Shown here: positions 7,881 through 54,297 of the stretch, one piece after another
Layout of the letters: each line of letters opens with the position of its first letter
Numbering within the stretch: the stretch's first letter is position 1
From: Octopus bimaculoides
Lineage: Eukaryota
Direction of reading: 5' to 3'
DNA: 64,000 nucleotides
Assembly (NCBI RefSeq): GCF_001194135.2
Contig: NC_069003.1
Span: 370,061-434,060, forward strand
The notes under the pieces: model-generated
Database searches by the model: none
Told to the model about the DNA's origin: nothing
What the model saw: only the letters and a program-made list of their open reading frames with translations
Made by a program: the position numbers and the translations under genes

Positions 7881-7953
7881 CTGGCCTGCAACAATAACAA
7901 CACAAATGCTTGATAAACTTACCTGGAAGAAAGAGAAAAAGGGAACACATTAA
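7881..7953 (-). other. Candidate recursive splice site (ratchet point) RS-C with 42-nt cryptic exon
   Basis: Minus strand ttttaatgtgttccctttttctctttcttccag|GTAAGTTT (junction 7923|7922); second donor CCAG|GTAAGG after 7881. Confidence 0.7.
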
Positions 7954-7987
7954 AATGTTATATAATGGAAACATTTTCAATAAACTG

Positions 7988-8215
7988 GTTAATCTTTTTA
8001 TGACTGTATTTCTAATGAAATATTACTATCGCTTTATGTTTAAGTGAATTTTGAAAAATACTTAATAATTTGGTGTGCTTCATTAGTATAACTACATTTA
8101 TCATTATGAAGCTGGTGTTTGGAACATAATGTAAAATTATCATGGAAAATTTTAAGAGCTTCTGCATCAAACAACTGGAAGTGGACCTTAAGACAGTTTG
8201 CGTGAAAGGGTTAAC
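7988..8215. mobile_element. TTAA-flanked (piggyBac-like) MITE, decayed
   Basis: Right end gcgtgaaagggTTAA (8200-8215); degenerate left end TTAAtctttttatgactgtattt at 7988; AT-rich non-coding interior. Confidence 0.5.
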
Positions 8216-10569
8216 CATTGTATTTCAAATTTCATTAAAACCAAACCTAAATCTTTAACATCTGAATTGGCAAAAACAATGAAACTTCCAAAATCTATGC
8301 TATACAACTAAGAGGAATGACAAAAACTATAGTGAATTAGAGATCAAAATACAATTTCCTTGAGTTACTTTTCTGGTGAATTAGATGTACTCACCCTTTA
8401 ACTAACGAACATTATTACCCTACATGATTCATTATTTGTATAATACGTTTACACCGGTTATAGTCATCTCTTCTGCATTTATTATCAAAAGTTTAAGATG
8501 CACATTTCAAACTGGCAAATCTGATTGACTGTGTGTATTTTTTCCCCTTAATGTAGATCTGCATCTTGCTGTTAGCTGATTGTTATACTTCTTGAACACA
8601 CTTCATATCTACTTCTACATTCACTGTCAAACAGTATCACACTACTTGCACATATTTCACAGTCTACAACATTTACTACCAAACAATATCCTACATTTTA
8701 TATATACTTCTTATAGTCTGCTACATACAGAATCACACAGCTTACACAAGCCACATACAGTCCACAATATTCCCTGTTCACCTTCCACTACCATCACCAT
8801 CACCATCACCATCACACATCTTACACACATGTATAGTCAGTTGTGGTCTCTCTCTGTGGTTCACTACCATGTATCACATAGCTCATGTAGTCCTCTACAT
8901 TTATTGACATGTTTCACTTCAGTACATTATCATCATCACACATTGCATTTAGACTTGAGGAAGTAGTGCTGAATTCTAGTGCCATTGTATGGTTTTATGC
9001 TGTGGTAGTCTGGTTATTTTAAATATGGTGTGTTGTAAGGTAATCTGGCTATGTTAAGTGAAAAGTGGTAGCGTCTGTTTTTCAGATATTTGTGTTGTGT
9101 GTGTATGTGTATACATATAACGGATAGAGTACAATTTGTGATTGTATAAGTGGGTGAATAAGTGAGTGAGTGCGTATGCATGAATTCTATGTATTTGGAT
9201 ATGCATTATGTGTATGTTAGCATGCATGTGTGTGATGATGTGTGGGTTATGTGTTTCTATATGTCGTGTATATGAACTTGTGTGATGCGGTGTGTGAGAA
9301 TATCTGTTTGCTTATGTGATGCGATGACTGAGTGCATGCATGTGTAGAGATGACACCAAAGTTAGTGAAGTGTTAGTGAAGCTAGAGTTGGAATTGAAAC
9401 ATGTGATATTTGTCACAGTTCTTCATTAAAAGGTCAATGTCACACATCACTGCAACTGAAGCATTTCTTCATCAACAAACATCTTCACTTTTGCTCTTTG
9501 CATAACACGTTACCATTGCCACCACCTTCCTCCTCCTCCTCACCACCACCACCACCATACTATCATTCCATATGCATCATCGTAACCAGCATTATCACAA
9601 AAGCTATCATCATCATCAACCACATCACTGTGTCTTTCATCATCACTACACTTACTACTACTGCATATACATATAATCAACCTTCCTTCCATATAAATAC
9701 CCCCATATATACATACCCTAACCCTAACCCTCATCACTGCTAAAGCAGCAGCACTACCAATATCAGAGTCACTTACTCGACCAGAACAAACAAAGAAACA
9801 TTCAAATATCAAAACTGAAAAAAACTACTACTTTTACTCCAACAATACCATTACTACATAGACGAGCAGCAACATTACTGTCGCTTATACCACAATCATC
9901 TCAATAGTTTCACCACCGCCGCCACCACCGCCACCGCCACCGCCGCCACCACCGCCACCACCAACAACAGAATTATCGTTAGTGTCATTACCACTGCAAT
10001 AACAGCACAGTCGCAACCATCACTATTGCTGCACCACACAAGAGCTACAGTTCCTTCACCCCTACCACAACCTCATCCTCCACCATCTCTTTTGCTGCCA
10101 GAACAGCTGTTTCCCTACCACCACCACTTCCTCGTCCGTCTCCATAATAATTACAACACCATTATTACTACCACGACCACCACTACAAAATCAATAATCA
10201 CCTCTCCAGAGATTAACCTCCAGCTTAAAATCTTCAAGCTCATCGACAAACAAAATGAGCAGAATTCTTCAAACAGTTTTGTATTTCGCCTGGAAAAATT
10301 TAGCATCTGCACACTGCTGCAACAACCACTGCTTGTTCTGTTCTGCTGTTTTTGTGCAACTTTAGATTCCCATTATACAGAATAGATGAGAGAGAGAGAG
10401 AGAGAGAGAGATTTCATGTTCAACTAATGACTTGAGGGATGTCTTGCACTTTCCGTTTTATACATTGCTTGGTGGTAATTTTGTTGTTTCTGATTGCTAG
10501 TGTGGTTTGATAGCTGTGCTGATAATGCTGGTGGTGGTGTTGGTGGTGAGGAAACTATAGTTACTACTG

Positions 10570-10765
10570 TTGTTGTTGTTGTATTGTGTAGTGTAAGTCA
10601 ACACTAGCAAATTTATGTTGCTGTATAGCCCAAGGTCAGCCTTTATTAAGCAGACGTATGGCCAAAGGTATTCCAACCATGACTATCCTGTCCTTTTCCT
10701 ATATGCAGGAATCCAGGACCACATTATTCAGTTTGAGTGAAATTTTGTTGTTATTTCTAACAGGT
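10570..10765 (-). mobile_element. (AAC)n-tailed repeat family copy
   Basis: Same motifs as 2960-3128 (ttccaaccatgactatcctgtcc; ttgttgttatttctaacagg). Confidence 0.55.
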
Positions 10766-51594: not shown

Positions 51595-51743
51595 GAGACA
51601 ATGGCCATGCTGGAGCACCGTCTTTAATCAAACAAATCGACCCCAAGACTTATTCTTTTTAAGGCTAGTACTTATTCTATCGCCCTCTTTTTGCCAAACC
51701 ACTAAGTTATGGGGACATAAATACACCAGCATCGGTTATCAAG
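51595..51743 (-). mobile_element. 3' part of CORE-type SINE
   Basis: ggccatgctggagcaccgtctttaatcaaacaaatcgacccc..ctaagttatggggacataaatacaccagcatcgg. Confidence 0.8.
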
Positions 51744-52375
51744 TAAGAGTCCCTTGTAGCGTGGGGAATTTATGTTTTGTAATGCCCTTAATATAATGTG
51801 TGTGTGTGTGTGTGTGCGTGTGTGGTGCAAAAAATATAGATAAGATGAAGACAAGCTAAAAAACAACAGCATATTAGATATACCCTCAGGAATTAGGAAA
51901 AATTAGAAGGAAGTGTCTCTCACACTTTGAACATATGCTTTTCTTATGAAAGAATAGACAAGGAAAAGTAAATGGTGAAACAGAAGAACACATGTGCGTC
52001 TATAAAACTGCTACAATATACTGAAGTGACTGGAAGTGATAAAGAGATCGCAAGAGAATTTTCCAACTCCAGTCAGAAGCAGAACAGTTGTAGTGTAGCC
52101 CCCATATCTTTCTATTTCTTTTAACTTTTTATAATCAGAAAAATCTGTGAAACCAGTTAAGCCTTTAAAAATAAACCATCTAAAAGATTCCCAGTGCATT
52201 TTCAACATATTTTTTCTACCCACACTCTCTCTTTTTCTCTCTCTCTCTCTCTCTCTCTCTCTCTCTCTCTCTCTCTCTCTCTCACACACACACACACACA
52301 CATACATTGCTAGACCAAGTGATAAAAATTATAGAAAGGATCATAGCTCAATTAATTATAAAGTGAGTAAGCAGT

Positions 52376-53216
52376 GATGAGATGCAGTTTGGTTTTATGC
52401 CAAGAAGAATCCCTACCAATGCTATCTTACTGGTGAGGCAACTGCAAGAGAAGCACTTGGCCAAATATAAACCTCTTCAGATAGCTTTAGTTGACATGGA
52501 GAAAGCCTTTGACAAGGATTCCCCTTATCAGGTGAGCAATATGGAAGCTAAGGATAGATGGGTAATTGATGAAACCTGTAAAAACCATGTACGGGGACAC
52601 CATCAATCAGGTGAAAGTTGCTAATGAGTATAGCAAGCAATATAGTGTACAAGTAGGAATCCACCAGGTATGGAAGCAAAGATCAAAATTCTAAAAAGTA
52701 GGAAAACAGAGAAATCGCAGACCCCTTCAGGAAGATGGCCCTGCTCAGAATGTAGAAAAGATGTTGGTAGAAACTCCATACAGTATACCAAGTGTGAAGG
52801 CTATGGACACATTAAAGGTGTAGTGGTATCACTGGAAGATTAACAGAGAAAGTAGTCTTTACACGTGGCAGATGTGCAGGTATGTTAAACACCAGAATTG
52901 TACAGAAACTAGACCCCTCAAATGTCTTGTGGGGTCCTTAGAAGTAGAAGACAGTTTCTGCTACTTAGGTGACCAAATTAGCAGTGGTGGAGGTTGTTCC
53001 AAAAGCACAGTTTTTAGAATAAGAACAGGCTAGGCAAAAATCAGAGAGTTATTACCTCTGTTAGTAACAATGGGTCTTTCTCTCATAGTGACAGCCAGAT
53101 AGAAGCCATGCCAAAAGAGACATGGAGCTCAGGCAGATGTTCAGCTGACCAGCTCCTGTCAATGCATCCAACTCATGCTCACATGGAAAACAGATGTTAA
53201 ATGATGATGATGATGA
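52376..53216 (+). mobile_element. RTE LINE RT fragment with internal deletions and 3' tail
   Basis: DEMQFGFMPRR..LVRQLQEKHLAK..VDMEKAFD..VGIHQ, jump over YADD to WK..CSECRKDVGRNSI..DSFCYLGDQISSGGG; tail gttaaatgatgatg at 53197-53216. Confidence 0.85.
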
Positions 53217-54216
53217 TTACACACACACACACACACACACACACACACACACACACACATATATATATATATGTGCATGTGTGTGTATTTTTTGCCTCAA
53301 TAACATTGCTGTTGAAATAATCATACACATGAGAAAATTTCTGCTTTTCCAGAATAAACTCGATTGAAAGCTGGCTTTTTTTAAATATGTAAAATGAAAC
53401 AGCAAGAAATTTGTTATTTGTAATTAAAACACTTTTTTCCCACTAATCATAAATATTTCAAATTCTTTAATAGAGATAAATTAAATTCAGCTGTAGAAAA
53501 AAAAATGCCTTCTATAGAAAAAAAAGTCCTCTATAGGAAAGAAAAATCTTCAGGGGATCCATTTGTAAACACACAAAAGACCAAGTGTAATTGCAGCACT
53601 AGTTTGTGACAAAGCAAAACTTAAAGATGAATAGAGAATACATCTTTATGAAATAGAATTAACATAAAATTCTAATATTAAGTGAACATCAATTATTACC
53701 TTATAGGGAAACGAATGTGAAGGTGAGATAACTGAATGAATGAAATGTTCAAGTTAATTGCCTTTGTTTATCTTGTAGTGGGGAATAAGTACTTGACCAC
53801 ATGATGGAAACAACAGCAGCCCTTGAGAAATATATTCCATTTATTAGGCCACATTCATTAATATATATATGATATAGTCCATTGGTAAACCAGATAAGAG
53901 ATATTTTCCATTAATACACATTTGAAGATGAAACATTCAGTAGGTTTTCCAATGACTGATTGAGGGGTAGGGTTACATTTATTCCTCAAAATATTTGATT
54001 TCATCTTTGCTCTATTGCATCATTGCACACTAGGTTTTTGGTTTCTGTTGTAATATTTCTGGCAATAATATCCATTAATTCTCTTTCAAGTCTTTCCTTC
54101 AATGAATGTTAAATTCAATTCCTTTTTTTTTCCGTAGTAACATAAGGCATTGTCTGAAAGAGGTGTTAACTGCTTCAAAGGAACAGAAAAGTACATTGAA
54201 AATATAACAAATTTAC

Positions 54217-54297
54217 CTACATACTGTTTTAAATGACAGGAATATTTTCTTGTTGAGAAACTTACCTGCAAATAAAAGAAGAAGAAAAAGAACGTAA
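54217..54297 (-). other. Candidate recursive splice site RS-A with 41-nt (or 49-nt) cryptic exon
   Basis: Minus strand cttacgttctttttcttcttcttttatttgcag|GTAAGTTT (junction 54266|54265); downstream donors ACA|GTATGT after 54225 and TAG|GTAAAT after 54217. Confidence 0.7.

Follow-up and report, generated by a model that had tools for sequence, protein, structure and literature searches.

The DNA analyzed here is a 64-kb stretch of the Octopus bimaculoides genome (contig NC_069003.1, positions 370,061 to 434,060; hereafter the window, with coordinates counted from its first nucleotide), which is microsatellite-rich, has a G+C content of 36.8% and is interrupted by nine N gaps. It carries three minus-strand sites at which a candidate 3' splice site directly abuts a candidate 5' splice site, and these were put forward in a preliminary description as ratchet points, that is, as candidate sites for the recursive splicing of a giant intron. 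An exact search for the 9-mer CAGGTAAGT returned three copies, all on the minus strand (7917-7925, 33663-33671 and 54260-54268), and none on the plus strand, which is the number and orientation claimed at the outset. Each copy extends to the 11-mer CAGGTAAGTTT, found three times on the minus strand and never on the plus strand of the whole window. The G of the GT lies at 54265 (site 1), 33668 (site 2) and 7922 (site 3), all on the minus strand, and the junctions first reported, 54266/54265, 33669/33668 and 7923/7922, were correctly placed (a slash marks the splice junction throughout). Read on the minus strand, the sites are ...TACTTACGTTCTTTTTCTTCTTCTTTTATTTGCAG/GTAAGTTTCTC... (site 1), ...TTAATTAACATATATTTTCTATTTTCCTTGCAG/GTAAGTTTCAG... 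(site 2) and ...TTTTAATGTGTTCCCTTTTTCTCTTTCTTCCAG/GTAAGTTTATC... (site 3), with a TT at +7/+8 common to all of them.

We then evaluated how unusual these sites are. Taken by itself, the count of the 9-mer is no more than mildly unexpected (p about 0.01): in dinucleotide shuffles, CAGGTAAGT had a mean count of 0.45 over both strands together, in agreement with the earlier estimate of about 0.2 expected copies per strand, and three copies were reached in 1 of 100 shuffles. Splice-site strength was assessed with acceptor and donor matrices that are generic metazoan approximations, used only for ranking. On this scale no other donor on either strand of the window matches those of the three sites (12.8 bits each), and their acceptors rank 1, 5 and 11 among approximately 3,300 minus-strand AGs, with scores of 14.7, 12.2 and 9.8, the first-ranking one (14.7) being that of site 3 and the best acceptor of the whole window. 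Combined acceptor and donor scores amount to 27.5, 25.1 and 22.7, while the next-best AG/GT reaches 17.0 on the plus strand and 14.7 on the minus strand. As a null, 400 sequences were generated from a third-order Markov model of the window; their median maximum score was 16.9, on average they contained 0.005 sites per window with a score of 22.5 or more (both strands), and three such sites occurred in 0 of the 400 simulations. Thus, unlike the bare 9-mer, the joint acceptor-plus-donor signal exceeds chance expectation. Weaker AG/GT juxtapositions were also observed at 27121 (+), 59714 (+), 47569 (+) and 35853 (-), all of them inside the range of the Markov null and likely due to chance. The best on the plus strand, TTTTCAG/GTAAAAAT at 27121, is what chance gives, as its combined score of 17.0 is close to the median maximum of the null.

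The sequence upstream of each junction displays the further signals expected of a 3' splice site. Branch-like YTNAY motifs at -26 to -30 followed by a pyrimidine tract had been claimed, and both are seen at all three sites: the branch-like adenosines lie at -30, -26 and -28, with no AG between the motif and the 3' splice site, these being sequence matches only, and site 2 offers an alternative branch-like TTAAT with its A at -30. Pyrimidines occupy 18/20, 16/20 and 20/20 of the positions from -23 to -4 at sites 1 to 3. At least 16 are present in this interval at only 8 of the 373 AGGT junctions of the window (both strands), and three of these eight are the sites under study, so that the remaining AGGT junctions reach this value in about 1.4% of cases. 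Moreover, positions -6 to -1 read TTGCAG, TTGCAG and TTCCAG at sites 1 to 3, respectively. The AG-free zones are long as well, with AG-to-AG gaps of at least 116, 43 and 64 nt representing fractions of 0.011, 0.106 and 0.052 of all minus-strand gaps, although this evidence is partly redundant with the pyrimidine tracts.

Downstream of the junctions, a second donor was found 42 to 49 nt away at every site (+49, +43 and +42, with scores of 6.3, 9.4 and 12.4), never stronger than the ratchet donor (12.8) according to the generic matrix, the margin at site 3 being small. A donor scoring 6.3 or more would fall within a 30-nt interval with a probability of 0.06 per site and approximately 2e-4 for the three, with the interval and the threshold chosen after inspection of the data. 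In a blind acceptor-ORF-donor scan (ORF, open reading frame) of both strands, the top three units were 54265..54217, 33668..33626 and 7922..7881, with totals of 18.5, 19.3 and 27.1, the next-best unit reaching 16.1. The first could be shorter (41 or 45 nt), should the weaker overlapping donors found at these distances be used. Judged by its sequence, each site thus appears to be the head of a short exon-like unit, in the layout of the cryptic recursive-splicing exons (RS-exons) known from flies and vertebrates, an architecture on which recursive splicing is now considered to depend (PMC8605326). In frames 0 and 2 none of the three putative RS-exons contains a stop codon, while frame 1 reads G-TAA in every case (the joint chance is about 0.04). 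In this respect the preliminary description has to be amended: the predictions of recursive splicing that can be examined in sequence held, but the "zero-nucleotide exon" it invoked should give way to a ratchet point plus a cryptic RS-exon of 42-49 nt. The second donor, its strength relative to the ratchet donor, the TT at -5/-6, the long AG-free zones and segment sizes near the fly mean of 18 kb go beyond what that description had predicted. Coordinates and scores of all these elements, and of the remaining features of the window, are collected in Table 1.

Table 1. Features of the window and their coordinates (splice-site scores are from the generic matrices).
Feature	Coordinates	Strand	Details
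Candidate ratchet point 1, AG/GT junction	54264..54267	-	TTTGCAG/GTAAGTTT; acceptor score 12.2, donor score 12.8
Candidate ratchet point 2, AG/GT junction	33667..33670	-	CCTTGCAG/GTAAGTTT; acceptor score 9.8, donor score 12.8
Candidate ratchet point 3, AG/GT junction	7921..7924	-	TCTTCCAG/GTAAGTTT; donor score 12.8
3' splice-site region of point 1	54269..54298	-	branch-like CTTAC 54298-54294 (A at -30); 24-nt pyrimidine tract 54292-54269; AG-free 116 nt upstream; TT at -5/-6
3' splice-site region of point 2	33672..33697	-	branch-like TTAAC 33697-33693 (A at -26); 16-nt pyrimidine tract 33687-33672; AG-free zone 43 nt; TT at -5/-6
3' splice-site region of point 3	7926..7953	-	branch-like TTAAT 7953-7949 (A at -28); 24-nt pyrimidine tract 7949-7926; AG-free zone 64 nt; TT at -5/-6
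Putative cryptic RS-exon 1	54217..54265	-	49 nt, not a multiple of 3
Downstream donor of RS-exon 1	54211..54216	-	TAG/GTAAAT, score 6.3
Putative cryptic RS-exon 2	33626..33668	-	43 nt, not a multiple of 3
Downstream donor of RS-exon 2	33620..33625	-	CAG/GTAGGA, score 9.4
Putative RS-exon 3	7881..7922	-	42 nt, frame-preserving, open in frames 0 and 2
Downstream donor of RS-exon 3	7875..7880	-	CAG/GTAAGG, score 12.4; fourth-best minus-strand donor
Putative intron segment, points 1-2	33669..54264	-	about 20.6 kb, 469 N in three gaps; no exon recognised
Putative intron segment, points 2-3	7923..33667	-	about 25.7 kb, 1028 N in three gaps; no exon recognised
Decayed LINE tail	14800..15830	+	reverse transcriptase and PHD-type zinc finger, with stops and frameshifts
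Second LINE fragment	52676..53100	+	69% DNA identity to the first
SINE-like family	5552-5725 / 51334-51529		
SINE-like family	16559-16800 / 25056-25312 / 56764-56951		
SINE-like family	26447-26597 / 41270-41421 / 51230-51384		
SINE-like family	28517-28677 / 62021-62189		
Microsatellite-bordered gaps	5171-5550, 6843-7381, 12958-13038, 25473-25684, 29002-29736, 48865-49009, 58351-58476		

These figures bear on the simplest alternative, namely that the sites arose by chance and are non-functional, lying in DNA that is either untranscribed or transcribed from the plus strand. The modest rarity of the bare 9-mer leaves room for it, and the searches made revealed no host gene that would fix the strand; pyrimidine-rich low-complexity DNA is common in the window, and the set of sites was chosen from a scan of many windows, which entails some selection effect. 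Nevertheless, three sites were observed where the Markov expectation is 0.005, all three on one strand, while the best site of the plus strand remains at about the level of the null's median maximum. In addition, all of them share the TT at -5/-6, a branch-like motif between -26 and -30, a long AG-free zone and a downstream donor at +42 to +49. Under the nulls used, chance is excluded at roughly 1e-6 or better, and we regard this explanation as very unlikely.

If the three units are exon-like, it has to be asked whether they are exons in the usual sense. No convincing coding exon was found in a scan of both strands for ORFs flanked by splice sites (a full six-frame Pfam scan was not made), which upholds the absence of a recognisable coding exon asserted previously, and none of the minus-strand ORFs of at least 45 amino acids in the outer parts of the window (1-7.9 kb and 54.3-64 kb) appeared protein-like upon inspection. 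Comparison of the six RS-exon peptides with 5.8 billion proteins revealed none sharing even three 5-residue words. As the protein catalogue includes Octopus proteomes, the three units are not annotated coding exons, with the reservation that absence from predicted proteomes does not equal absence from mRNA. The missing peptides fit exons that never reach mRNA, without proving that these are cryptic RS-exons.

The units could still be ordinary short cassette, poison or microexons of 42-49 nt, belonging to a coding or non-coding minus-strand transcript, where they would serve as exons or be skipped in a single step and the GTAAGT would play no role in re-splicing. This would agree with each unit being a complete acceptor-to-donor structure, the three being the best of the window, with their being open in two frames, and with unit 3, whose 42 nt preserve the frame and whose donor (12.4) almost equals the ratchet donor. 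However, it would not be expected that three unrelated exons start with the identical, optimal donor GTAAGTTT, which, once joined to any upstream exon, becomes a 5' splice site by construction. Moreover, inclusion of the 43-nt or the 49-nt unit would cause a frameshift, and the encoded peptides are found in no catalogued protein, even though Octopus proteins are catalogued. Overall, we consider ordinary exons unlikely. Of the three units, unit 3 seems the likeliest to enter mRNA at times as a microexon, and its occasional inclusion is conceivable because its donor nearly matches the ratchet donor and the exon is short and in frame.

The possibility that the motifs are carried by transposable elements, or by another dispersed repeat with splice-site-like ends, was evaluated within the window. 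A three-way alignment of the +/-150 nt flanks revealed no similarity beyond the motif, and dust-filtered BLAST of the +/-400 nt flanks against the window returned self-matches only, so that the unique and mutually unrelated flanks first described are borne out within these 64 kb. Bona fide repeat families of the window are present in 2-3 copies each, whereas the flanks of the sites are single-copy, and a dispersed repeat origin was rejected on this scale. Structured RNAs point in the same direction, as Rfam gave no match in the window at gathering thresholds and a tRNA search was likewise negative. The window is certainly rich in fragments of long and short interspersed nuclear elements (LINEs and SINEs), and copy number of the flanks was assessed in the window, not genome-wide; still, a repeat origin of the motifs is, to our judgement, the most improbable of the explanations considered.

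As to the repeats themselves, the decayed tail of a LINE, a retrotransposon without long terminal repeats, lies on the plus strand within the segment between sites 2 and 3. Its 312-residue stitched translation has Octopus vulgaris and O. bimaculoides proteins as closest named relatives (62-71% identity), and is only 43-45% identical to named cnidarian proteins, which supports an octopod origin of the DNA. A second, related fragment lies on the same strand, and both copies would be antisense to the proposed minus-strand gene. Short dispersed SINE-like families, 72-81% identical over 150-260 nt and in both orientations, are also present, none of them overlapping a candidate ratchet point; their spurious translations recur as "...LDALPNANHSE..." in the list of ORFs.

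On the plus strand the motif reads ACTTACCTG, which is also the 5' end of the U1 small nuclear RNA (snRNA). A U1 snRNA gene or pseudogene was rejected, with no Rfam match at gathering thresholds and with sequence that diverges at once after ACTTACCTG. All three sites display 9 nt of perfect complementarity to the 5' end of U1 snRNA, and could act in splicing without being ratchet points, either by recruiting U1 against premature cleavage and polyadenylation or as intron-retention decoys. The minus strand carries 59 copies of AATAAA, against which such protection could be useful. Nevertheless, a pure U1 site has no need for an abutting, top-ranking combination of branch site, pyrimidine tract and CAG, nor for a second donor at exon-definition distance, and to our knowledge the decoy exons described are not AG/GT juxtapositions. 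Such a role is therefore quite unlikely, if a shade less so than chance.

The arrangement of the three sites was examined with regard to the N gaps. The spacings of 20.6 and 25.7 kb given previously were reproduced, with 469 N and 1028 N included in them. Each unit, from branch site to downstream donor (approximately 85 nt), lies inside a single gap-free block (49010-58350, 29737-37840 and 7382-12957), and the nearest N is 4085, 3931 and 540 nt away from sites 1, 2 and 3, respectively. The motifs are thus unaffected by the gaps, each unit being contained in one contiguous block, and no reading frame across a gap is needed. Seven of the nine N gaps border di- or trinucleotide microsatellites on at least one side ((AT)n, (AC)n, (GA)n, (CTG)n or (CAG)n), and are probably unresolved simple repeats, of which this setting is more typical than of misjoins.

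Strand composition was also analyzed. With simple repeats masked, A exceeds T on the plus strand by 4.8%, in almost every 8-kb bin; in other words, the minus strand is T-rich. Sense strands of introns are generally T-rich in mammals, and the T-richness of the minus strand is weakly suggestive at best, being compatible with minus-strand transcription and not diagnostic of it. A possible strand asymmetry of AATAAA and ATTAAA was considered as a clue to direction and discarded as uninformative, with near-equal numbers on both strands. The hexamer GTATGT, scattered over most of the window, has 105 copies on the minus strand against 31 on the plus strand. This bias presumably stems from a microsatellite of the (TATG/ATAC)n type that is itself strand-biased and may be the tail of a repeat family.

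Altogether, we propose that the three sites are intronic recursive splice sites of a long minus-strand gene whose intron would span at least 64 kb, a reading to which we assign a probability of roughly 0.7 on the strength of the sequence. We infer that the window is transcribed from the minus strand, that the sites are used and that events follow the order given next. Transcription would start from the high-coordinate side of the window and run towards its first nucleotide. Following the Drosophila and vertebrate model, transcription of each site would lead to the definition of a short cryptic RS-exon (49, 43 or 42 nt), with U2AF and U2 assembling on the CAG, the long pyrimidine tract before it and the branch site (-26 to -30), and with U1 bound at the donor 42-49 nt downstream. 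The upstream exon would then be joined to the AG, and the preceding segment of approximately 20-26 kb would leave as a lariat. At that point the end of the exon would abut GTAAGTTT, recreating a strong 5' splice site, and this regenerated donor would outcompete the weaker RS-exon donor, so that the RS-exon is lost when the following segment is excised. Once the cycle had been completed at all three sites and the true downstream exon had been joined in a last step, nothing of the window would be left in the mRNA.

Several points weigh against this proposal, and the doubt that remains concerns almost entirely transcription and usage. No host gene, exon or transcript was identified that would attest minus-strand transcription. 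Of the two ORFs that run across sites 3 and 1, neither was on record in an exact look-up, and a 931-residue composite of 16 ORFs spanning or flanking the sites had no homologue at E <= 0.001; the lack of a match in the latter search indicates that the protein catalogue does not include intronic ORFs from this genome. Likewise, site 3 and site 1 were searched for in metagenome contigs, a collection without cephalopod genomes, by exact scans with their 24- and 26-nt cores, and no match was obtained. The AT skew has no companion in GC skew, which in the masked sequence is zero overall and varies in sign between bins. Each of the three sites belongs to a different contig, the scaffold being gapped, and for this reason their order, co-orientation and spacing depend on the scaffolding. 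Lastly, the matrices are generic metazoan ones that were not trained on cephalopods, real genomic sequence may have heavier tails than the Markov null allows for, and repeat membership was assessed within 64 kb only.

The literature searched contained no paper describing recursive splicing in molluscs, be it in cephalopods at large, octopus or squid, in accordance with what had been suspected initially, and the sole co-occurrence of cephalopods and recursive splicing consisted of two unrelated entries of one reference list. Recursive splicing has been demonstrated in Drosophila and vertebrates; beyond them, only a prediction in locust with partial support was found (PMC8892266). The mechanism itself is known, and what is new is a candidate lophotrochozoan locus. 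In cephalopods, introns are very long and filled with repeats and nervous systems are large, which are the settings of recursive splicing in flies and vertebrates. If the sites are used, the mechanism extends to Lophotrochozoa, beyond arthropods and vertebrates, and a concrete, testable locus with three sites at exact coordinates becomes available. In that case a genome-wide search would be justified, which could show how far recursive splicing follows intron length from one animal lineage to another, and could tell if the logic of the RS-exon is an ancestral one. A broader claim, that fly-type recursive splicing operates in the giant introns of cephalopods and is common there, with optimal (Y)n-CAG/GTAAGT sites, RS-exons of about 45 nt and a spacing of about 20 kb, is a tentative one to which we give somewhat less than even odds. 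Were it true, stepwise intron removal through RS-exons would be either ancestral to bilaterians or repeatedly evolved where introns are very long, and the dense layout of flies, rather than the sparse one of vertebrates, would be found in a large-genomed lophotrochozoan.

Among known systems, the closest likeness is with the intronic ratchet points of Drosophila that carry cryptic RS-exons, as in Ubx, kuz, luna and Bx (Hatton 1998; Burnette 2005; Duff 2015; Joseph 2018; Joseph and Lai 2021, PMC8605326). As in those, strong 3' and 5' splice sites abut in the form (Y)n-CAG/GTAAGT. TT is present at -5/-6 in 99.5% of fly ratchet points versus 44% of all fly introns, and the branch points of fly ratchet points are situated between -36 and -21, their distribution peaking at -30 (Duff et al., bioRxiv 10.1101/006163); the octopus sites have this TT in all three cases and branch-like adenosines at -30, -26 and -28. 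Fly introns contain 1-6 ratchet points, delimiting segments of 18.0 +/- 9.0 kb (Duff et al., bioRxiv 10.1101/006163), and several sites per intron at a roughly even spacing of about 20 kb are likewise seen in the window, with at least three sites and segments of 20.6 and 25.7 kb. The ratchet donor of flies is generally stronger than the RS-exon donor, and exon content is "generally out of frame" (PMC8605326). Similarly, the putative octopus RS-exons (49, 43 and 42 nt, compared to about 50 nt in flies) have a second donor no stronger than the ratchet donor, two of the three (49 and 43 nt) are not multiples of 3, and all are absent from catalogued proteins. On the other hand, the octopus is an octopod mollusc and not an insect, a TT at +7/+8 is found in all three of its sites, and these are predicted from sequence, whereas the Drosophila sites have evidence from transcripts, lariats and conservation.

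The expressed recursive microexons mI and mII of Ubx, which are 51 nt long and begin with GTAAGA, offer a model for unit 3 in particular. This unit, too, is short (42 nt), frame-preserving and stop-free, with a consensus donor at its start and a strong one at its end (12.4 versus 12.8); it differs from mI and mII in that its peptides are found in no catalogued protein, and units 1 and 2 would shift the frame. In vertebrates, recursive splicing through RS-exons takes place in very long introns of neuronal genes (Sibley 2015, cited in PMC8605326; PMC6224609; PMC6110456), and only nine fully suppressed intronic ratchet points have been definitively noted in mammals (PMC8605326). The window resembles the vertebrate cases in its RS-exon layout, with the proposed competition between regenerated and RS-exon donors, and in that the sites lie in very long, exon-free sequence; it departs from them in having three optimal ratchet points in one 64-kb stretch, a density that is fly-like. 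Finally, a recursive site has been predicted in the 230-kb intron 2 of locust NPF1, with some support from U2AF65 RNA immunoprecipitation (PMC8892266). The locust is an insect and its site has some experimental support, unlike the octopus sites; nevertheless, both cases are motif-based predictions of recursive sites in a giant intron of a non-model invertebrate.

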